Positions 3,177-63,665 of a stretch of 64,000 nt of DNA are shown here, one piece after another. Under the pieces are notes generated by a model. That model ran no database searches, was not told the DNA's origin, and saw only the letters and a program-made list of their open reading frames with translations. A program made the translations under genes and the position numbers. Positions within the stretch are counted from its first letter, which is position 1; each line of letters starts with the position of its first letter. Location of the stretch: positions 1-64,000 of the IMG/VR virus record IMGVR_UViG_3300009158_000031; one strand, given 5' to 3'.

Positions 3177-5075
3177 ATGAACATACGAGAAAAAGAAAAT
3201 TTATACCTTTTAGCCAAAACTAAATATTACGAAGGTGAACCTATTCTATCCGATTTCGAATTCGATAATCTCGAAGATGAATTAAAGCTAGAAAATTCTC
3301 AAGTAATTAAAATTGTAGGTTCTCAAGATCTAAAGGATATTAAGTTTAATCACGTATCTCCTATGCTTTCGTTAAACAAAATTCAAGTTCAACGAAACGA
3401 ATCAATCACTGTTGCTAATACTAAATATCTTACATGGTTAACTGCCAATCAAAGTAATACTTCCTTACAAATGGAAGCTACTCCTAAATTCGATGGTTCT
3501 TCTTGTAATTTGATTTACGAAAATGGTAAACTAACTCTCGCATTAACTCGTGGTGATGGTGCTAAAGGCCAAAATATTATTGAAAAAATGAAATTGATTG
3601 TACCTAATACAATCTCTTCAAAAGATAAAATCGAAATTCGAGGTGAAGTGGTTATTCCAGTAACTACGTTCGATTCTAAATATGCCGCAATATATAAAAA
3701 TCCACGAAACTTCGTTGCTGGTATTCTAGGTAGGGATATCGTCGATACCTCAATTATTTCAGATTTTCATTTTATAGCATTCGAATGCAGAATTCATACA
3801 AACACATCTCAACACCATTCAAACACTCTACAATTCTTAATCGATAATCAATTCAGAACTACACCAAAAATGATTATGTTCGATAAATTCGAATATGCTT
3901 ATAATGAAATACATAATTATCGAACAAACGGTTCACCTTACCAATTAGATGGTATGGTTATTAAATTCCCAGAAAATTTAAGAAATGTAATTGGCGAAAC
4001 CGATTATGCACCTAAATGGGCAGTAGCAATTAAATTTCCTCCAAAGGAATCTATTACCACAATCAAAAAAATTATATGGAACGTTGGTATATCTTCTGAA
4101 TTTACACCAGTTGCAGTACTCGATCCAATCGATTTAGATGGAACTATCGTTTCAAATGTTAATCTTCATAATTATGGTAATGTAATACGTCAAGGTTTAC
4201 TTCCAGGTGCTCAAGTAATTATCGTAAAATCTGGTGATATCATTCCTATCGTTCAAAAAGTTATTAAACCTTCTACTGAATCTATCGAAAAATATCTACC
4301 TTCTCCGTGTTCTTCTCAATGTAAAATTGAAGTACAAGGTAATATTCACTTAGTATGTACAAATCCTACATGTCCTAACAAATCAATTCTACAATTAATG
4401 CGAGGAATTGGTACCTTCGGTTTTCGAAATGTAGCCGGATCTACGATTAAGAAAATTCACAAAGCAGGTATACAATCAATACATGATATATTCGATAATT
4501 CTAAATTCAACGAACAAAAACTAATTGAAAGTGGCGAATTTAAAAAAGGAAGATCGCTAGAAATTCTTCTTAATTCTCGAAATAATCCAGAAAGAAAAAT
4601 AACGCTTCCCCTGGTTATTGCATCGTTATCCTTCGATAACGTTGGATTTTCTACTGCTACACAAATAGCTAAGTTATTCGAAAACAAAACACCTGATTGG
4701 ACCGGATTATCATCTGCATCTTATTTACCTTTCTTAAATAAACAATCTACTGAATATCTATCAGTTCTTCGCTTAATACAAACTCTAGAATCTAATGGAT
4801 TTGCAATACAAAGCGAAGAAGTTCGTACAATTTCAGTAAATTCAATTATCTTTGAAATGACCGGATCACCAAAACCTTATGGATTTAAAACCAAGGAAGA
4901 TTTCTTAAAGTTAATTACCAACAATGGTTATTCTCATGGTGATCTTAATGATAAATGCAAAATATTAATTACTGACGATATCAATTCAAATTCATCTAAA
5001 ATGACAAAAGCTAAAAAGTTAGGTGTTGAAATCATGACTTATGAAGATATTCTTAATAAAATCAAGAATATATAA
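3177..5075 (+). CDS. ligA: NAD-dependent DNA ligase
   Basis: KxDG motif (PKFDG), TRGDG, RGEV, NPRN, DGMVIK, PKWAVAIKF, a Cys4 Zn finger and a C-terminal BRCT domain. Confidence 0.95.
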   Translation: MNIREKENLYLLAKTKYYEGEPILSDFEFDNLEDELKLENSQVIKIVGSQDLKDIKFNHVSPMLSLNKIQVQRNESITVANTKYLTWLTANQSNTSLQMEATPKFDGSSCNLIYENGKLTLALTRGDGAKGQNIIEKMKLIVPNTISSKDKIEIRGEVVIPVTTFDSKYAAIYKNPRNFVAGILGRDIVDTSIISDFHFIAFECRIHTNTSQHHSNTLQFLIDNQFRTTPKMIMFDKFEYAYNEIHNYRTNGSPYQLDGMVIKFPENLRNVIGETDYAPKWAVAIKFPPKESITTIKKIIWNVGISSEFTPVAVLDPIDLDGTIVSNVNLHNYGNVIRQGLLPGAQVIIVKSGDIIPIVQKVIKPSTESIEKYLPSPCSSQCKIEVQGNIHLVCTNPTCPNKSILQLMRGIGTFGFRNVAGSTIKKIHKAGIQSIHDIFDNSKFNEQKLIESGEFKKGRSLEILLNSRNNPERKITLPLVIASLSFDNVGFSTATQIAKLFENKTPDWTGLSSASYLPFLNKQSTEYLSVLRLIQTLESNGFAIQSEEVRTISVNSIIFEMTGSPKPYGFKTKEDFLKLITNNGYSHGDLNDKCKILITDDINSNSSKMTKAKKLGVEIMTYEDILNKIKNI

Positions 5076-5083
5076 CTAACAAC

Positions 5084-5425
5084 ATGAACAAGCTACCTAC
5101 ATATCAAGAGTTCTTAAATGAATCATTAGTTATCCTTTCTTTGAAAGGTATAATGAAGAATGAATTTATGAACAATATAGAACTTAAGCAAGAGTTCGAA
5201 ACCGCTAGAAGATTATTCTTCGACAATGGTTCATGTTTATTCGATCACATTGAAGGCGATCGATTTACGCTAAGAACGCATTCTACATTCGAAACTTCGG
5301 ATATGGATGCACTCATTACAAAGATCAACGACGAAATTGAAAGGTTTTCTTTCAAGAGAGTCGGTCCGGCTAAAAAGAATATCATTAAAGAAAATCTTTG
5401 GTCTCTTAAAGCCAAACTTAATTGA
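5084..5425 (+). CDS. Putative internal head protein with a capsid-targeting N-terminus
   Basis: MNKLPTYQEFLNE resembles T4 IP MKTYQEFIAE. Late motif AATATATA at 5067-5074. Confidence 0.6.
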   Translation: MNKLPTYQEFLNESLVILSLKGIMKNEFMNNIELKQEFETARRLFFDNGSCLFDHIEGDRFTLRTHSTFETSDMDALITKINDEIERFSFKRVGPAKKNIIKENLWSLKAKLN

Positions 5426-12538: not shown

Positions 12539-13090
12539 ATGAATAAACATATACCTTCCTTCAATTCTTTCATAAATGAAGGAAAAGAAATTCCTATTGA
12601 AGTGACTAAAGGTCAAGCTGCCTATTATAAAGGTCTTCCTAAATCTACTGCTCAAAAGAAGAAATCTCAAATCACCGCACAAGCAGAGAAACCTTCAGAT
12701 GATCCTTCAGCATATAAAGCTTTACCTGGAGATAAAAAAGCTCAATCTAAAGGAATAGTTAAAACTTCATCTCATGTGAAAAAATACAAAGAGATGTTTG
12801 GTGAATCTGTTATTAATGAAAAAGAAGAGGAACTTAAAAAAGGACCTATCGAAAACCCAGATATTGAAAAAGCTTTAAAGAATAAGGTAGAAGAAACCGG
12901 AGTAGATTTAGATATACTTCGAGTAGTTATGCGAAGAGGAATGGCTGCTTGGAAAGCTGGTCATCGTCCAGGAGCTACTCAAGAACAATGGGGTTATGCA
13001 AGAATTGCTTCTTTTGTTACTAAAGGACCTACTTACAAATCAACTGACTCAGATATGGCTAAAATCGCAAGAGATAGAGGTCAATTATAA
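12539..13090 (+). CDS. Putative internal head protein (conserved viral RGxAAWxxGHRPGATxxQW domain, possibly DUF5824)
   Basis: N-terminus MNKHIPSFNSFINE and a late motif at 12508. Confidence 0.6.
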   Translation: MNKHIPSFNSFINEGKEIPIEVTKGQAAYYKGLPKSTAQKKKSQITAQAEKPSDDPSAYKALPGDKKAQSKGIVKTSSHVKKYKEMFGESVINEKEEELKKGPIENPDIEKALKNKVEETGVDLDILRVVMRRGMAAWKAGHRPGATQEQWGYARIASFVTKGPTYKSTDSDMAKIARDRGQL

Positions 13091-13663: not shown

Positions 13664-14170
13664 ATGAAACATATTAAAACATTTGAAATCTTCGTTAATG
13701 AAGCAGTTAAATTCAATCCAAGAAATCTAGATCAAGGAACTTTCTTTGATTTTATCGATAGTATGGATGCAGAAACTATTGAAGATTATGGAGTTGAAAT
13801 GGATAACATGACTAAAGGTTATGAAGCCGTTGCTAAAGAATTAGGTGGTAATTTAAAAAACGTTAGCTTTGGTGATTCAGAGAATAATGATTATGAATTT
13901 TTTAAATTCTTAATGAATGTTTCTTTAGGAAGCATGGCATTTGATAAAGGAGTTAAACTTCCTGAAGTAAAATCTTTAAAAACTTTTAATATTCCATCAG
14001 GTTGGAGAGACGGTGATAATCAAGCTACATTGGTAGAAATTCCAGGAGTAGCGAATTACGTTACTTGGTTAGATGGTGATGATTTTTCTAATTTTGATTA
14101 TTGTGCTTATAAATCTTCGGATCTTCCCAAGATTGCAAAATGGGCTCAAGAGAATTACGTAGAATCTTAA
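13664..14170 (+). CDS. Putative internal head protein
   Basis: MKHIKTFEIFVNE capsid-targeting-like N-terminus. Confidence 0.6.
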   Translation: MKHIKTFEIFVNEAVKFNPRNLDQGTFFDFIDSMDAETIEDYGVEMDNMTKGYEAVAKELGGNLKNVSFGDSENNDYEFFKFLMNVSLGSMAFDKGVKLPEVKSLKTFNIPSGWRDGDNQATLVEIPGVANYVTWLDGDDFSNFDYCAYKSSDLPKIAKWAQENYVES

Positions 14171-55792: not shown

Positions 55793-58345
55793 ATGGCTAA
55801 CATTTCAATAAAAGAACTTTTTCCAGCGGATTCGCTAATAAATGCCGTTGAAAAAATAAATTTTAACTTCGATCAAGTAATTCTTGGTGGCGGTGGCCCT
55901 CAAGGAGATACTGGTGTTACTGGTCCTGCTGGTGGACAAGGTCCAGTAGGAGATCGAGGAAATTATTGGTTTGCTGGAACTACTTATGGAGGAGTTACTG
56001 GTGATGCCTATGGTAATCCATTAGAATTAGGTGATGGATTTGTAAGTAGTGGAGGAACTGTCTACATATACTCTTTTACTGGAGGTTCAACCGGATGGTA
56101 CAATACCGGAATTAGTCTTGTTGGTCCTAGTGGTCCTCAAGGAGTTACTGGTGGATCATTCGAATGGCAATATTTTAGAGGAGCTACCGACATTGGTGTT
56201 AACTCATGGATTGCTGCTACTGCATATGGTGCAACTACGACGGTTAGTTCAAATCGAGATATTATTTCGTATGTTGGTGCCGAGAAGAATATTGTATTTA
56301 TGGGATCTACTGGTTGGGCAATTGACCAACTTTCGGATTTTGGTTACTTCCCGACTGGATCTAATTTACAAAAACAGCTACCTACATTAACAGTAATTCA
56401 AAGATATATTGATGGAGATAGTGTTAGTGGAATTGCATTTGGTGCAGTAGGTTTAACTTCTGGTACTGCTGGAACACTTCCTACTTCAGGAGATCTTAAT
56501 GAACCGGTATCTGCTCTAGATTTTACATATTATGGATTTGAAACTACAACAACGGATCCTTGGTATAACGGAACTCTTATACAAAGAGCGGTTATTCACT
56601 CACCTAAAATGCCTATGGCAATTAAGATTGGTGGAACCACTCCTCTAGAAACACCGGCTAACCTTTATATAGAATCTCAATTCTTAAAATTTAACGATTA
56701 TCTAAGTGAAAAATCTTGGTTAACCGGAAACGATTCAACCGGATCTACTCCATTAGGTTTTCATCATATATTTTCAAAATCCGTTGGATTAAATCCTCTT
56801 TCAACCGGAGTTGGTAAACAAGGTGCTGTGGTACTTCAAGGAATTGATGGAACTTATTCGATAGGATCTTATCAACATCGATTGGGAAATACCATTATTG
56901 GTACTACTGCCGGTTTAGCTGGTAATATTGTTGCTGGATTAATTATATCAAGAGGAAATACCGGTGGAATTAGTGCATCAAATAATTACGATTCTCATAT
57001 ATCATTACATGCCGATAACACATCAAATGCAGTTGCAAAAATTATTGCTTCAACTGATGCGAATGGAATTCCTAGAACTCAATTTGCTTCGAGTCGTTTA
57101 GGTATTATTGGTGCTACTCCAGGAGCTACTGGATCTGCCGGATTTTTAAAAGGCGCTTGGAATTCAGAAAATTATACGCCTAAGGTTCCCTTTCACATCA
57201 TTCAAGATAGTGGAAATCTAAATACAATTAATGGATCAGGTGCTGGTATATCCAGTTTAACTCTTCCTGCAAATTTATCTGGTTTAAGAGTTTTATCAAT
57301 GACTGATGTTATTGATGCTCGAGGTGGTGGTCTTATTCATGGACTTACTCCAGCTTATAATATTACATCTTTATCAGGTCCAATGGGAGCTACTGTAATT
57401 TATTCATGGGATGATATTGTTCTAAGAACATTTGCTAGAGGAGCAACAAATATGTCTCCTAACATTTGGGTTAATCCTGGAGGAAGTGCAAATGGTGGAT
57501 CTTTAATAGTAGGTTTAAGTTTTCCAACTACTTCGTCTAATCTTTTAGGAGGAACCGGTCAATATATTAGATCTAAACTTGCCATTGGTGGATCAATAAC
57601 TGTAGGAGAGATTGCATGGCATAGAGATTATCAACCACCAACAAATGGTATTAGACTTCAAGGTTCTATATACCAAGGGGTAACCGCAAATAATCCAGGA
57701 GCTTCTGCATCATTTGATGGTTATGGATATTATGGAGGAACCGGAGGAATTGGATCTGAATCATTTTTAGCGATTGGTGATTCTACATTTACTGCTAGAG
57801 CATTAGGTGGATATAAATATTACCAATCACAAGTTGGAAATGGAGGAATTCCATCAATATTTGCTGGAGCATTCCAAGGACCTATAATTATTGAAGGATC
57901 TAATAAAACAACGGATGGAGCAAATGGTCAATTACAAGATATTCGTATAGTTAACTCAAGTATGTTTAATCATGCGGCTGCCTTAATTGGAGGAAAAGTT
58001 ATTATTGGAGGATCTGCATATTCTCAATCATGGTACACAAAAGACCCGTATTATACCGGTGGTTTAGTTGCTAATGTAGTTGTAGTTGGAGATCCAATAA
58101 CCGGAGCTACTGTATCAGGACATGGTTTAGGTTATCCTGAAACTGCTGCTCTATCAGTTAACTCAACAACTAAAGGTTTTGCACCACCGAGAATGAGCCA
58201 GACACAAAGAGTTGCAATGGGATCCGTCGCCCAAGGTCTTATGGTTTATCAAGTAACTGGAACTCCCGGTGCTCCTGGTCCTACTGGAGAAGGTTTATAT
58301 ATGTACACTAGTGCTGGATGGACTGGTCCAATGAGATTCTCGTAA
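55793..58345 (+). CDS. Tail fibre protein
   Basis: N-terminal DSLxxAxxKINxNF, short collagen segments, and a C-terminal STTKGFAPPRM...QGLMVY motif common in Bacteroidota fibres. Confidence 0.75.
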   Translation: MANISIKELFPADSLINAVEKINFNFDQVILGGGGPQGDTGVTGPAGGQGPVGDRGNYWFAGTTYGGVTGDAYGNPLELGDGFVSSGGTVYIYSFTGGSTGWYNTGISLVGPSGPQGVTGGSFEWQYFRGATDIGVNSWIAATAYGATTTVSSNRDIISYVGAEKNIVFMGSTGWAIDQLSDFGYFPTGSNLQKQLPTLTVIQRYIDGDSVSGIAFGAVGLTSGTAGTLPTSGDLNEPVSALDFTYYGFETTTTDPWYNGTLIQRAVIHSPKMPMAIKIGGTTPLETPANLYIESQFLKFNDYLSEKSWLTGNDSTGSTPLGFHHIFSKSVGLNPLSTGVGKQGAVVLQGIDGTYSIGSYQHRLGNTIIGTTAGLAGNIVAGLIISRGNTGGISASNNYDSHISLHADNTSNAVAKIIASTDANGIPRTQFASSRLGIIGATPGATGSAGFLKGAWNSENYTPKVPFHIIQDSGNLNTINGSGAGISSLTLPANLSGLRVLSMTDVIDARGGGLIHGLTPAYNITSLSGPMGATVIYSWDDIVLRTFARGATNMSPNIWVNPGGSANGGSLIVGLSFPTTSSNLLGGTGQYIRSKLAIGGSITVGEIAWHRDYQPPTNGIRLQGSIYQGVTANNPGASASFDGYGYYGGTGGIGSESFLAIGDSTFTARALGGYKYYQSQVGNGGIPSIFAGAFQGPIIIEGSNKTTDGANGQLQDIRIVNSSMFNHAAALIGGKVIIGGSAYSQSWYTKDPYYTGGLVANVVVVGDPITGATVSGHGLGYPETAALSVNSTTKGFAPPRMSQTQRVAMGSVAQGLMVYQVTGTPGAPGPTGEGLYMYTSAGWTGPMRFS

Positions 58346-59155: not shown

Positions 59156-61750
59156 ATGGCTACATCTTCAAAATTTATTTTACTTAATGATGCGGTATTG
59201 ATGGAATACATCTATGCGGATCAGGCTCAAATAAATGTACCAGGGAACGAATTCCGTATCCCTACTACAACTGCACCGTTATGGAAGACTCAAAATCTAC
59301 ATACCGGAGAATATCAAATTCTTAATGATGATGCTTGTGGAATAATTCAGGATGGTCTTCCAGTAGGAACGGCTAATATCCGAAATCATTCATATGCTCA
59401 AATCTCAAGATCTAAAGTTGCAGAATTAGATATTGATCGTATTGTATTCTATAATGATTTCGATACAGATCTTACTTCGTCTGCTAGTTTACCTATCAGT
59501 TTCAACACAGGAAAATCTCCGGTATATGATACTGTCAAATTTCATCTTGTACAAGGATTTAATTTTCAAGGTAATGAAGCTTTTGCGGCATCAATAAAAG
59601 CCAAGAAGAGAAATGGAACTAATCTAATTTTAGCCAATATACTTTATTCTAAATCAGATGCATGGGAAACTCTTAATCCATCATCATTCTTATTTGGTGG
59701 TAGAGTTTATGATTCATATGTAGAAGTAAGAGTTCTTTCTCTTTACAATCTAGTATATGATTATTGGTATACTACACTTAATGGAGATTCAGTTGCTGAA
59801 AAAATTACGGATGGATCCGGTTTTGAACCTTCTCAAAATATACAAATAGATTTTAGATTTTTGAATAATCCAACTTTTGTTGATGGACAAAATTATCTAA
59901 CTTTTTACGAAGGAGTTCAAGCAGAAATACCTACTAAAGATCAATTCGAATCTATTAGTGCTTATATTGCAGAATCTAATGATGGTGATTATATAGAATT
60001 TTATGGAAAATTCAATGGTGATATTATCGAGAATTTTATTCTAGATATTAATGCATCTGGTTATGATTACATGTTACTTCACGATTTAGTCGTTTCTGAA
60101 TATGTTTACGATCAAACTAGTGCAACTTATGCGTGGGTACAAACTGCCGATGTTCAACTTTCACAAGTTGACAATTATGATTTACCCAATACATTTCGTC
60201 CAGTAATTAAGAACACGAATGCAATATCTTTTAAAATAGATTATGTACTTCGACTATATAATAGATCAGATAATTCACAAATTTGGAAAGCCTCATCTAT
60301 GATTTCTAGTAAGGTTAATAAATATGGAAGAGTTCTTAAGGCTATTAATTTAGGTTCAAATCCTATTCAACTTAAAGTATACAATCAATTAGTATCTAAA
60401 GAAATAAATTTACAAAGGGCTTTAGATCCAGTCATTAGCAATGTAAGATATTTGACATCGTTCACCGACAATAACGCTATTTCTATCGCATGGGATAATA
60501 TTACTACTGGTGGAACTGCCACTCAAGGAACTATTCAAAATGTGTTACAAAACGGAACTAATCTGAGAATATATCCTCAAAGTTTAGGAAGAATAATGGT
60601 ATCTAAAGGAACCTCGTATGTACGTTTTACTTTATATCAGACTAAAAATAATGCTAATACAATTCTAGATCTTTCTGGTCTAGGTGATGTTATTTTAGAA
60701 TTTGGATCTAATACTGATGAATCTATTACATTTGATGAATTTCCAACAACGGCAGCCGATAAAGCAAGAGGTCAAGTTGTATTTCGTTTAAATGAAACTC
60801 AATCAACTAATATTCTAGGTTTAAAAAATCGAGAATTTAATCTTTACATACGAAATGAAAAGGGAACTACTGCCGGTTTAACCGGAGTAACTTCTATGGA
60901 AATAACCAATACAGCAGCAGCTAATGATGCATCCTCTAGAGGAGAAAAACAACAACTCTATACTGGTAAATTCTATTCATCTAGCGAATATGCTAAATTA
61001 AAAGAAATTGATAAAATTGAAGATCTTCTAATAACCATTAACGAAAAAAATGGTCAAATCAGTAGACAAGAAACGATTATCGTTGAAAGAAATTCTACCG
61101 TTGTTAACAAAGATAATCAAATTTCATCTCTTAATTCTCAATTAACTAAATCTAATTCAGATTTATCTCAGGCTTTAACAAATAACGCTGCATTAGTAGC
61201 AGCAGATAATATAGAAGACGCTGAATTCAATGCAACAATTGCTTCATTATCAAAACAATTATCTACAATTCAATCCGTAGTAGGACAACAAACTACATTT
61301 ATACAAAATATAAGTAATGAAAAGACTACATTGACTAACGAGAATAATCGTTTGCTAGCTTTAATAAGTACTCTTAATGCAACAATCTCTGCTTTACGAG
61401 CAGTTCCAGTTCAACAACCGATTCAGACTTTTACTCCTATAGAAGTTAGAAACTTTGGAACTTCTAGTAGTATTTCTGCGAATACCAATTTGATAAGCTC
61501 TCCTACTGCAATAACTAGAAATGAAGTAGCAGTATTACCTCCTTCTTCTTCAGTTATATCTAGTCCTGTTCCTAGTTTTGCAGTTACTCCAGTATCAGCT
61601 CCTAGAGTGGTAACGGTTTCTCCGAATGTAATTGCCGCTCCATCGGTAACAATTTCAGTTCCTGCACCTTTCCAAACTGCAATTAAAGGAACTAATGTTA
61701 AAGGAACTAATGTTAAAGGAACTTCATCTAAAGGAACAAATCAACAATAA
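59156..61750 (+). CDS. Structural protein with a C-terminal coiled coil and low-complexity tail
   Basis: 864 aa; ends with KGTNV repeats. Confidence 0.6.
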   Translation: MATSSKFILLNDAVLMEYIYADQAQINVPGNEFRIPTTTAPLWKTQNLHTGEYQILNDDACGIIQDGLPVGTANIRNHSYAQISRSKVAELDIDRIVFYNDFDTDLTSSASLPISFNTGKSPVYDTVKFHLVQGFNFQGNEAFAASIKAKKRNGTNLILANILYSKSDAWETLNPSSFLFGGRVYDSYVEVRVLSLYNLVYDYWYTTLNGDSVAEKITDGSGFEPSQNIQIDFRFLNNPTFVDGQNYLTFYEGVQAEIPTKDQFESISAYIAESNDGDYIEFYGKFNGDIIENFILDINASGYDYMLLHDLVVSEYVYDQTSATYAWVQTADVQLSQVDNYDLPNTFRPVIKNTNAISFKIDYVLRLYNRSDNSQIWKASSMISSKVNKYGRVLKAINLGSNPIQLKVYNQLVSKEINLQRALDPVISNVRYLTSFTDNNAISIAWDNITTGGTATQGTIQNVLQNGTNLRIYPQSLGRIMVSKGTSYVRFTLYQTKNNANTILDLSGLGDVILEFGSNTDESITFDEFPTTAADKARGQVVFRLNETQSTNILGLKNREFNLYIRNEKGTTAGLTGVTSMEITNTAAANDASSRGEKQQLYTGKFYSSSEYAKLKEIDKIEDLLITINEKNGQISRQETIIVERNSTVVNKDNQISSLNSQLTKSNSDLSQALTNNAALVAADNIEDAEFNATIASLSKQLSTIQSVVGQQTTFIQNISNEKTTLTNENNRLLALISTLNATISALRAVPVQQPIQTFTPIEVRNFGTSSSISANTNLISSPTAITRNEVAVLPPSSSVISSPVPSFAVTPVSAPRVVTVSPNVIAAPSVTISVPAPFQTAIKGTNVKGTNVKGTSSKGTNQQ

Positions 61751-62317
61751 ATGATACTTCAAAATAGAAATGATCTTTTTAAAGTTGAGTTACCTAGAAT
61801 ATTCGTACCTCAAGAAATAAAAGATCGATACGCACCATACCTCTTTAGGATGCCAACTCCAGTAACGGATGTGGCCGATATTGTGAATTATTCTATTCAA
61901 TCAATAACTATTCCTAATTTTAATTTTCAACCAATTGAACAGGTTAAGCCTGGTTATTATGCAGAAGCTAAAGGTACTACAAGAAGATTTCGTCAAGCTC
62001 TATCACCAGAGATGTTAATTGATAGAAACTTCACCGTCACATTTCAGCTGTTAGACGGAAATGTTAATTATTGGATATTATTAGAAACATTCTTTCATTA
62101 TTATAGCTTTGATAATCGTAATCCATATACATTTGATGTTCCTATTGGTATATTTGATGCTGAAGGAAATAAGATGTACTCATCAATATTCAAAGATTGT
62201 TTGTTTACCGGAATGAATCAATTCACACTTTCTTATTCAGAATTAACTCCTGAATTTAGAACCTTCGAAGCTACATTTGCATTTAATGAGATAAAATTAG
62301 AATTTGAAACTCAATAA
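61751..62317 (+). CDS. Tail-tube-fold protein (gp3 tail terminator-like)
   Basis: SIQSITIP...FTVTFQL...FKDCLF...FEATFAF pattern of the tube/terminator fold. Confidence 0.55.
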   Translation: MILQNRNDLFKVELPRIFVPQEIKDRYAPYLFRMPTPVTDVADIVNYSIQSITIPNFNFQPIEQVKPGYYAEAKGTTRRFRQALSPEMLIDRNFTVTFQLLDGNVNYWILLETFFHYYSFDNRNPYTFDVPIGIFDAEGNKMYSSIFKDCLFTGMNQFTLSYSELTPEFRTFEATFAFNEIKLEFETQ

Positions 62318-62318
62318 A

Positions 62319-62957
62319 ATGAAATTTTACAAATATCATGAATTTCTAAATGAGGCATCTATTGCATCGGTGATTGATAGAATAGGAAATGAAGAGAATA
62401 TTCAAATTGAAAATATGGATGATTATGTTAATCATTTCATAAATATAGGCGCAAAAAGGATTGCCGGCGGTTCATCTGCTGAAATACTCGAATACCAAGG
62501 TGGAGTTATCAAGATATATGCTCCTATCAATGATCCAGGAATGACTAGATATTTAGCATTTTGTTTATCTAATAAAACGAATTCATATACTCCTAAAATA
62601 GAAAAAATTCTAAAGGTTTGGGCCAATGAAGAAAGATGGATATTTGCAGTATTCATGGAAAATCTAGAAAAACCAAGTGGAGATTTTACCAATGAATTAA
62701 ACATGTATTTAGAAACTCAATTAAAGGGATATCGTTTCGGTAATAATAAAGAGGATACCAACTTTTTTGAAGGTTTAAAATCTATTATAATTAAATATTC
62801 AAAAGATTCAGATAAAAAATCTTTAAACGATATAATTGCATTCCTTAATGGATCAATTGACAAATATCGATATCAGGTAGATTTTGGTCCTCAGAATTGG
62901 ATGATGCGAAGAGGTCAATTAGTTTTAATTGATCCATTTTGGCCAAGTATGGAATAG
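62319..62957 (+). CDS. Ser/Thr protein-kinase-fold protein with a capsid-targeting-like N-terminus
   Basis: Gly loop IAGGSSAEI, VIK lysine, MENL hinge, catalytic DFGPQN and metal-binding LIDP. N-terminus MKFYKYHEFLNE. Confidence 0.75.
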   Translation: MKFYKYHEFLNEASIASVIDRIGNEENIQIENMDDYVNHFINIGAKRIAGGSSAEILEYQGGVIKIYAPINDPGMTRYLAFCLSNKTNSYTPKIEKILKVWANEERWIFAVFMENLEKPSGDFTNELNMYLETQLKGYRFGNNKEDTNFFEGLKSIIIKYSKDSDKKSLNDIIAFLNGSIDKYRYQVDFGPQNWMMRRGQLVLIDPFWPSME

Positions 62958-62994
62958 GATTGAATATATAAATTAATATAAAAACAACAAACTA

Positions 62995-63300
62995 ATGAAT
63001 ATCATTCCAACATTTGATGGATTTATTAACGAAGGAAAGATTTCCATCGGAAAAATGAATTTTTTTGTACGAGTTTTTAACGATGCAAAAGGACTATACG
63101 TACAATTTATACCGGATGGCAAGACTTTAGATAAATTTTCTAAGAATGACATGGTAGAAAATATAAAAGATAAACTAGATTCAGCAATGCCTCAATTTGC
63201 AAGTGCTCTTTGGTTCGCAATTGACAATCAAGCCACAGGAGTAATTTTCAGATTAGACCCATATAAATTAGAAGAAATAATTACAAAAGCTATTAAATAA
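62995..63300 (+). CDS. Putative internal head protein
   Basis: N-terminus MNIIPTFDGFINE; late motif at 62963. Confidence 0.6.
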   Translation: MNIIPTFDGFINEGKISIGKMNFFVRVFNDAKGLYVQFIPDGKTLDKFSKNDMVENIKDKLDSAMPQFASALWFAIDNQATGVIFRLDPYKLEEIITKAIK

Positions 63301-63665
63301 TGAAAACATTCAAAGAATATCTTATTGAAAGTAATACTTTCTCTGAAGAAGAAATCAAAGCACTTAATGAAAATCTTAAGTCTGAATTAACTGAAGCTGA
63401 AGAAGCTAAAATCGATAAAGCTATCAAAGAATTTTGTAGTCAATATCTTGATAAAAACAAGAATATAAAAGAATTTAATGAAGAGCTTACAAATGAAGGT
63501 TTTCTAGGATCTATCCTAGGAGGTCTTACCGGTTTTGCTCTAGGATCTTCGATCGGTAAAATTATTGCAAATGTACTAGGTATTGAGAGAGGCGTAATTT
63601 ACGATTTACTAACAAGTAGACTTGTTGGAGCTGCATTAGGTGCTGCATTAGGAAAACGTGTATGA
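63300..63665 (+). CDS. Putative internal head protein with a glycine-zipper C-terminus
   Basis: N-terminus MKTFKEYLIE; LTNE is followed by GFLGSILGGLTGFALG...VGAALGAALG. Confidence 0.65.
   Translation: MKTFKEYLIESNTFSEEEIKALNENLKSELTEAEEAKIDKAIKEFCSQYLDKNKNIKEFNEELTNEGFLGSILGGLTGFALGSSIGKIIANVLGIERGVIYDLLTSRLVGAALGAALGKRV

Follow-up and report, generated by a model that had tools for sequence, protein, structure and literature searches.

A T7K-family minimal kinase with a T4-type leader: a candidate head-packaged protein in a 254-kb phage genome

The first 64 kb of IMG/VR virus record IMGVR_UViG_3300009158_000031 (64,000 nucleotides, called the window below) contain, close to their end, a gene for a 212-residue protein whose identity as a minimal kinase of the T7K family, named for gp0.7 of phage T7, is well supported by sequence comparisons. 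The record is a linear genome of 254,393 bp with 33% G+C, it is estimated to be 83% complete, and its genes lie almost all on the + strand. The kinase begins with a short leader that resembles those of the packaged internal proteins of phage T4. The explanation that we favor, with a probability of roughly 0.55, is that it is a Ser/Thr(/Tyr) kinase that is packaged in the head by means of this leader, cleaved after E12 and injected into the host. A virion-packaged kinase had been proposed at this place in an earlier, sequence-only reading of the window, and every part of that proposal that can be tested by computation has held.

The kinase core and its relation to T7 gp0.7

The open reading frame (ORF) is genuine. 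Its frame is conserved in 21 metagenomic orthologues of the same length, 41–86% identical to it and none of them with an informative name, and it runs from an ATG at 62319 to a stop codon at 62955–62957. A TTG in the same frame at 62304 was also considered as the start, and was dropped because the orthologues begin at the ATG (MKFYKYHEF...).

Conservation was assessed in two alignments, a close-family one of the 21 close homologues and a wide one of 66 diverse relatives, with a mean column identity of ca 21%. The relatives were gathered with a profile of the 21 close sequences against 1.84 billion representative proteins, which found 812, mostly of 170–230 residues. The motifs that had been named from the sequence, that is, the glycine-rich (Gly) loop, VIK, DxxxxN and IDP, are all found in the ORF and conserved in both alignments (Table 1). 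G51, S53, A54, K65, D188, N193 and D205 are invariant in the close family, and across the 66 relatives G51, D188, N193 and D205 are still invariant, with K65 and P206 each at least 90% conserved. D72, at the start of the predicted αC helix, is invariant in the close family, and no acidic partner for K65 is evident within that helix (residues 73–84) in either the sequence or the model described below. The chain ends only seven residues beyond D205 of the DP motif. The features of a eukaryotic-like Pkinase (full bilobal domain, activation loop, APE, helices F–I) were not found, as the protein stops after the DFG-equivalent.

An AlphaFold2 model of the protein (predicted local distance difference test, pLDDT, 84.5; predicted template modeling score, pTM, 0.79) has a five-stranded N-lobe and three helices, with a short catalytic and DP hairpin at the extreme C-terminus. 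Foldseek searches of this model against PDB and Swiss-Prot gave kinase-like folds only (E ca 1e-4, TM 0.3–0.4), which bears out the minimal kinase fold suggested earlier. The top BFVD matches, with E from 7e-9 to 1e-6 and TM up to 0.68/0.75, are to small phage kinases, of which many carry a T7-type annotation.

The link to T7 gp0.7 becomes clear with the relatives included. The query alone has a weak match to phrog_15752, the PHROG of the T7 gp0.7 kinase (E 0.0038); among the 66 relatives, this PHROG is matched by 62 (best E 1e-21), phrog_18305 (kinase) by 39 and phrog_2828 (serine-threonine kinase) by 37. Alignment of the 66-relative profile with residues 51–232 of T7 gp0.7 by hhalign gives a probability of 98.5 and an E-value of 2.3e-15 over 169 columns, and the Gly loop, VIKV, D-x4-N and ITDP of T7 gp0.7 all fall in register. 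One intermediate relative, P0035, has direct tblastn matches to T7-like and Munch-type kinases, and PF27024 (Phage_T7_kinase) is listed for it in Pfam. The IDP ending, which had been likened to that of T7 gp0.7, is the counterpart of the published DP(V) motif of T7K, with the homology established via intermediate sequences.

Searches with the kinase itself returned little. A PDB sequence search with E up to 10 gave nothing, and the only tblastn matches among 50,697 phage records were chance-level ones to Erwinia phages. Weak Pfam matches occur among the 66 relatives, namely to YrbL-PhoP_reg in 16, to Kinase-PolyVal in two (best E 5.8e-4) and to APH in one (E 0.0032). The query has no match to Kinase-PolyVal (PF18762) or to the APH or choline-kinase type (PF01636), the likeness to the latter being at the fold level only.

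T7K is an experimentally proven protein kinase that disarms many bacterial defense systems by mass phosphorylation (PMC13645617). The window kinase shares with T7 gp0.7 a homologous core, a minimal architecture with nothing past the DFG position, DP in place of DFG and a phage-restricted family, and by analogy it would likely also share the promiscuous action on host proteins and the anti-defense role. There are, however, several differences. The T7 protein has a C-terminal DNA-binding shut-off (SO) domain that the window kinase does not have. Jumbo-phage and prophage homologues of T7K also lack this domain (PMC13645617), and the window kinase is therefore placed with this divergent, kinase-only branch. 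DPV in place of DFG is a hallmark of T7K, although the V is not conserved in the jumbo-phage variants (PMC13645617, a 2026 study); the window kinase has I204-D205-P206-F207, that is, DPF and not DPV, with no conserved Ser directly after it. It also bears an N-terminal leader of the capsid-targeting type, and its gene closes a tail/baseplate string in a T4-headed phage of 254 kb, while the T7 gp0.7 gene is an early-region gene of a podovirus of 40 kb.

A second comparison is with the polyvalent-protein kinase domains of Bacteroidetes (pro)phages, which include stand-alone versions (Iyer et al. 2017, PMC5512222). In these Kinase-PolyVal proteins the C-terminal subdomain is likewise missing, and they have been predicted to travel in capsids and to enter the host along with the DNA (PMC5512222), but their delivery was inferred from a multidomain architecture and not from a cleavable leader.

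The leader and the T4-type head genes

The kinase begins, as read, with MKFYKYHEFLNEA. All 21 orthologues have E12; two positions before it they have L, I or V, the position directly before it varies freely, and the one after it holds A, S or G. The leader is kept in every full-length close orthologue, with canonical versions such as MKHIKVFEQYVNEA and MKNLHTFEEFLFES. Since alignments with the distant relatives and with T7 gp0.7 begin only near residue 27, the leader and the linker helix that follows it can be regarded as an add-on to the kinase core. The leader region has a pLDDT of 51–65 in the AlphaFold2 model. A secretion signal peptide was considered as well and dropped, the leader not being hydrophobic.

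In phage T4, the internal proteins (IPs) are packaged, cleaved at [LI]xE and injected, and they counter host defenses at entry (PMC3012670; bioRxiv 2022.04.14.488369); [LI]xE is the processing rule of the gp21 protease (PMC5694885). As read from NC_000866, IPII and IPIII begin with MKTYQEFIAEA, and IPI begins with MKTFKEF and is cleaved further along. The suggestion of a capsid-targeting-like leader agrees well with these data: the kinase leader is close to MKTYQEFIAE/A, it ends in a gp21-type [LI]xE site, and T4-type head machinery is encoded in the same genome. In both phages a leader of ca 10–12 residues that ends in [LI]xE plus a small residue stands on unrelated cargoes, and a gp21-type protease, a portal and a gp23 capsid protein are present. 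The IPs of T4, however, number three, and no enzyme of the kinase sort is among them, whereas the source genome has ca 31 leader genes, whose products are candidates for packaging and include the kinase and a RimK-type ATP-grasp protein.

T4 Alt offers another precedent. It starts with MELITELF. Synthesized late, it is taken into the head, gp21 trims it at ITE-6, and it enters the host along with the DNA (PMC5694885). Like the proposed window kinase it is an enzyme that modifies host proteins, and the alt gene adjoins the tail-tube-like gene 54. The two differ in that Alt carries out ADP-ribosylation instead of phosphorylation and has an unrelated fold, and the leader of the window kinase is IP-type and not Alt-type.

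The head genes of the source genome include Portal_T4 (E 5e-71), a gp21-type prohead protease (Peptidase_S77) and a gp23-type major capsid protein, whose nearest counterparts are in an uncultured 462-kb phage (54% identity) and in Prevotella Lak megaphages (ca 40%). Peptidase_S77 forms the start of a 633-residue ORF (101682–103583), the remainder of which is long, acidic and helix-rich and probably represents the scaffold. This ORF contains 23 [LI]xE sites, compared to 8.1 expected, and in site density is surpassed within the genome only by a 468-residue ORF in the head module (94045 onwards), which has 21. The capsid protein (103692–105302) begins with MYLINE, and its first 45 residues hold four [LI]xE sites where 0.58 are expected (Poisson P ca 0.003). 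The kinase has two only, the leader site and one within an N-lobe strand. Taken as sequence evidence, this pattern supports a T4-like protease specificity in the source phage.

The leader is also found well beyond the kinase. About 31 genes, or about one-tenth of the genome, have an N-terminal leader similar to MKxIxTFxEFLNE and are otherwise unrelated. The pattern [FY][LIV]NE occurs within the first 20 residues in 26 of the 342 genes, compared to 0–5 in later segments of 20 residues, and when 28 leader genes are aligned, F and E alone are conserved. Clusters are located at 5–14 kb, at 62.3–63.7 kb, at 93–98 kb beside the portal gene and at 217–224 kb, such that leader genes flank the head genes, and ten stand in a row at 133–137.6 kb (133186–137603). 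Outside the window, leader genes are at 69416, 93264, 96008, 96296, 97953, 109121, 112546, in the row just mentioned and at 217410–224112; the gene at 217410 has the same YHEFLNE in its leader as the kinase. To judge from their sequences, the products of the ca 31 genes form what may be a very large set of internal or ejected proteins of the T4 type.

Genomic position, expression signals and relatives

The gene directly upstream of the kinase gene, for a weakly tail-tube-like protein of 188 residues, closes a same-strand run that also holds a baseplate wedge gene and very large fiber-like proteins. The order of the tail-tube-like gene and the kinase gene is kept, with the same neighbors, at the locus of a 64%-identical orthologue (L009). 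This position suggests late rather than early expression of the kinase.

The T4 late-promoter consensus is TATAAATA. A motif close to it, ATATA[TA]AA, is found within 40 nucleotides upstream of 52 gene starts in the genome, compared to 5 expected; the protease gene is among the 52, as are many leader genes. In the window, examples are at 5068, 12509, 13646, 24576 and 62964, and from 24.6 to 62.9 kb no gene start has one beside it, an indication of very long structural transcripts. The kinase gene has no such motif of its own and abuts the structural gene upstream, so that it is most simply read as transcribed together with the tail genes. The kinase homologues in L006–L009 and L018 likewise have no late-promoter-like motif directly upstream, and a scan for sigma-70 promoters and terminators over 58–64 kb stayed at chance level. 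On the earlier assignment of the gene to a late region, the evidence is partial: the kinase does close the same-strand tail/baseplate run, and a late-promoter-like motif of its own is missing.

A 45%-identical orthologue (L006–L008) is located among accessory genes (UvdE, NT5C, RNase HII), inside a cluster of genes that carry this same kind of leader. The distant relative P0035 (L018:1943-2560) lies between T4-gp15 and sheath genes, and its neighbors begin with MITFKQFIAEA, MISFKQFITEK and MITFKQFIQEK. The cultured Rhizobium phage RHph_I1_18 (MN988519) has Peptidase_S77 and a homologous kinase (EVB91_002; hhalign E 6.5e-9; L020:1201-1866), the latter with an annotated TTG start (Met in vivo, printed L) followed by KSFSEHIAES; the gene next to it (EVB91_003; L020:1866-2567) begins with MISFKSHLNES, and tblastn gives a second matching place in this genome. 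In 49 of 145 distant relatives the N-terminus is Alt-like, M-[KR]-[LIV]-x-E-[LI], a pattern that only 10 of the 342 genes of the source genome have. Judging from these N-termini, both leader types, IP-type and Alt-type, may deliver kinases. No recognizable leader was found on the kinase of Salmonella phage Munch.

Regarding function, the 1,769-residue relative P0027 (L017:3254-8563) has the kinase domain fused to the anti-CBASS domain Acb1, a hint at an anti-defense role for the kinase family. In the large multi-stretch relatives P0024, P0026, P0028 and P0029, no informative Pfam domains were found.

As to the genes around the kinase, the two that follow it both have leaders (Table 1). The 101-residue one begins, as read, with MNIIPTFDGFINEG, and the 121-residue one has a glycine-zipper, membrane-like C-terminus, with weak Gly-zipper matches in Pfam. 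On the upstream side, an 850-residue protein (55793–58345) has N-terminal collagen-like G-x-x repeats and a counterpart with PTL_trimer in L009, and an 864-residue protein (59156–61750) has a C-terminal part made up of a coiled-coil region, Ser/Pro/Val-rich repeats and KGTNVKGTNVKGTS. The two are probably fiber or tail proteins, without family assignment.

Several leader proteins elsewhere in the record have recognizable domains. The gene at 109121–110626, near the head genes, encodes a 501-residue leader protein (MMNLKYFSDFVNEA) that belongs to the RimK-type ATP-grasp enzymes (E 2e-34) and has a Zn_protease-like tail; it is a candidate for a second packaged protein-modifying enzyme. Of the others, one has a KTSC domain (222842–223450), one a DUF5824 and one a weak match to the NleE cysteine-methyltransferase effector family (E 7e-5), and the PHROG matches include a cytidyltransferase and a ParB-like nuclease.

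Table 1. The kinase gene with its parts, and neighboring or leader-bearing features of the window.
Feature	Position	Strand	Basis or remark
Leader-tagged T7K-family kinase gene, complete ORF, 212 residues plus stop	62319..62957	+	ORF call, 21 orthologues, single copy in genome
Leader, residues 1–12 (MKFYKYHEFLNE), with predicted prohead-protease cleavage E12/A13	62319..62354	+	Conservation in orthologues, T4 likeness
Linker helix, residues 13–26, close subfamily only	62355..62396	+	Distant relatives and T7 gp0.7 align from ca residue 27
Kinase core, residues 27–212: N-lobe, three helices, catalytic loop, DP motif, nothing after	62397..62954	+	hhalign, AlphaFold2, fold matches
Gly-rich ATP loop, residues 44–56 (GAKRIAGGSSAEI), including G50-G51-S52-S53-A54	62448..62486	+	G44, G51, S53 and A54 invariant in 21 close homologues
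V63-I64-K65, strand-3 lysine	62505..62513	+	Aligned to VIKV of T7 gp0.7
Catalytic loop D188-F-G-P-Q-N193	62880..62897	+	Aligned to DMHSGN of T7 gp0.7
I204-D205-P206, DP motif in DFG place	62928..62936	+	Aligned to ITDPV of T7 gp0.7
Upstream gene, 188 residues, weakly tail-tube-like (phrog_45, E 2.2e-4)	61751..62317	+	Stop 1 nucleotide before kinase ATG
Two overlapping late-promoter-like ATATA[TA]AA motifs, after kinase gene and before next leader gene	62964..62983	+	Motif scan
Neighboring leader gene, 101 residues (MNIIPTFDGFINE/G)	62995..63300	+	Position-specific scoring matrix (PSSM) rank 10/342
Neighboring leader gene, 121 residues (MKTFKEYLIE/S), closest in genome to T4 sequence	63300..63665	+	Beside kinase in L009 too
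Leader gene (MNKLPTYQEFLNE/S)	5084..5425	+	ATATATAA motif 8 nucleotides upstream
Leader gene (MNKHIPSFNSFINE/G)	12539..13090	+	Leader scan
Leader gene (MKHIKTFEIFVNE/A)	13664..14170	+	Leader scan

Proposed mechanism, alternatives and implications

By analogy with the T4 and T7 proteins, we infer the late expression, packaging, cleavage, ejection, activity and targets of the kinase. The gene would be transcribed together with the tail and baseplate genes, and the leader would direct the precursor of the kinase to the scaffolding core inside the prohead. Cleavage after L10-N11-E12 would follow, by the gp21-type prohead protease (Peptidase_S77). The mature kinase of ca 200 residues would stay among the DNA in the head and be ejected with the genome into the next host, and there it would phosphorylate host proteins before any phage gene is expressed. 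The most plausible targets are defense and nucleic-acid-handling proteins, as for T7K.

A number of points weigh against this scenario. The closest family alone barely detects T7 gp0.7 (hhalign E 0.014), so that membership in T7K rests on a transitive, albeit strong, chain, and the query has no match with E up to 1 in the copy of Pfam that was searched. The fold is also similar to those of small-molecule kinases (thiamine kinase, homoserine kinase, FN3K), and the VIA Z-score of ca 8 is middling. The leader of the kinase is a divergent one, ranking 32 of 342 by PSSM with 9.2 bits, compared to 20–30 bits for typical members. The Phe three before the leader Glu is encoded by TTC in 22 of 28 leaders, as against 39% of the Phe codons genome-wide, which means that part of the leader conservation could be at the DNA level, or result from recombination between leaders. 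Finally, as mentioned above, the kinase gene has no late-promoter-like motif upstream.

The alternative that survives best, although we consider it unlikely, is that of an unpackaged T7K-family kinase that acts in the producing cell only, its N-terminus being a translation-start or recombination cassette with no targeting role. The TTC bias fits with this, as do the tandem arrays of leader genes, which are typical of cassette expansion; moreover, the kinase of L006–L008 is among accessory and not structural genes, and T7K itself is early and unpackaged. A cassette, however, does not account well for the kind of conservation that is seen, which obeys [LIV]-x-E in the protein, while L, I and V are encoded by several codons and the middle residue is free. 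In addition, the leader fits the experimentally defined T4 sequence, the genome has a matching protease together with a scaffold and a capsid propeptide that are both rich in [LI]xE, and leader genes flank the head module.

Packaged or not, the protein could also be a phosphotransferase for small molecules (APH, choline-kinase or thiamine-kinase type), with a metabolite, an antibiotic, a sugar or a nucleotide signal as its substrate. Foldseek gives thiamine kinase, homoserine kinase, FN3K and also CcrZ at similar E-values, Pfam finds APH in one and YrbL-PhoP_reg in 16 of the 66 relatives, and the C-lobe that binds protein substrates is missing in the kinase. However, T7K has the same truncated architecture and is a proven protein kinase (PMC13645617), and the sequence-profile links to that family are far stronger, which makes this option improbable.

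A packaged but idle protein, that is, a pseudokinase or a structural internal head protein that acts by binding (compare the T4 inhibitor IPI*) or by filling the head, is the least probable option and can be given very little weight, because even though most T4-type internal proteins are not enzymes and no acidic residue for K65 is evident in the predicted αC helix, the invariant D72 might stand in for that residue, and the invariance of the ATP-/Mg-binding and catalytic residues over very divergent relatives argues for retained catalysis.

Coming back to the packaged and injected kinase, both of its components, the T7K-type kinase and the T4-type leader, are already known; in our literature search, no paper was found in which a phage kinase is connected with a capsid-targeting sequence. 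It is possible, although we put this forward tentatively, that several T4-headed lineages (the source phage, its metagenomic relatives and RHph_I1_18) load a promiscuous kinase of the T7K type via IP- or Alt-type leaders and inject it as a broad anti-defense weapon, active as soon as infection begins, which in the present genome would be one of an injected arsenal of ca 31 proteins, far above the set of T4. RHph_I1_18, which is cultured and has the same arrangement, offers a ready experimental model, and with the leader as a simple sequence rule, candidate injected effectors can be listed for large phages that are uncultured.

In the T7 infection, T7K has to be transcribed and translated first (PMC13645617). 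If the proposal is correct, a pre-packaged kinase would remove this expression delay and could act on first-response defenses at the moment of DNA entry. It would then be, as far as the literature was searched, the first kinase among the T4-type internal proteins, and this class would grow from the three small proteins of T4 to dozens of cargoes, enzymes included.

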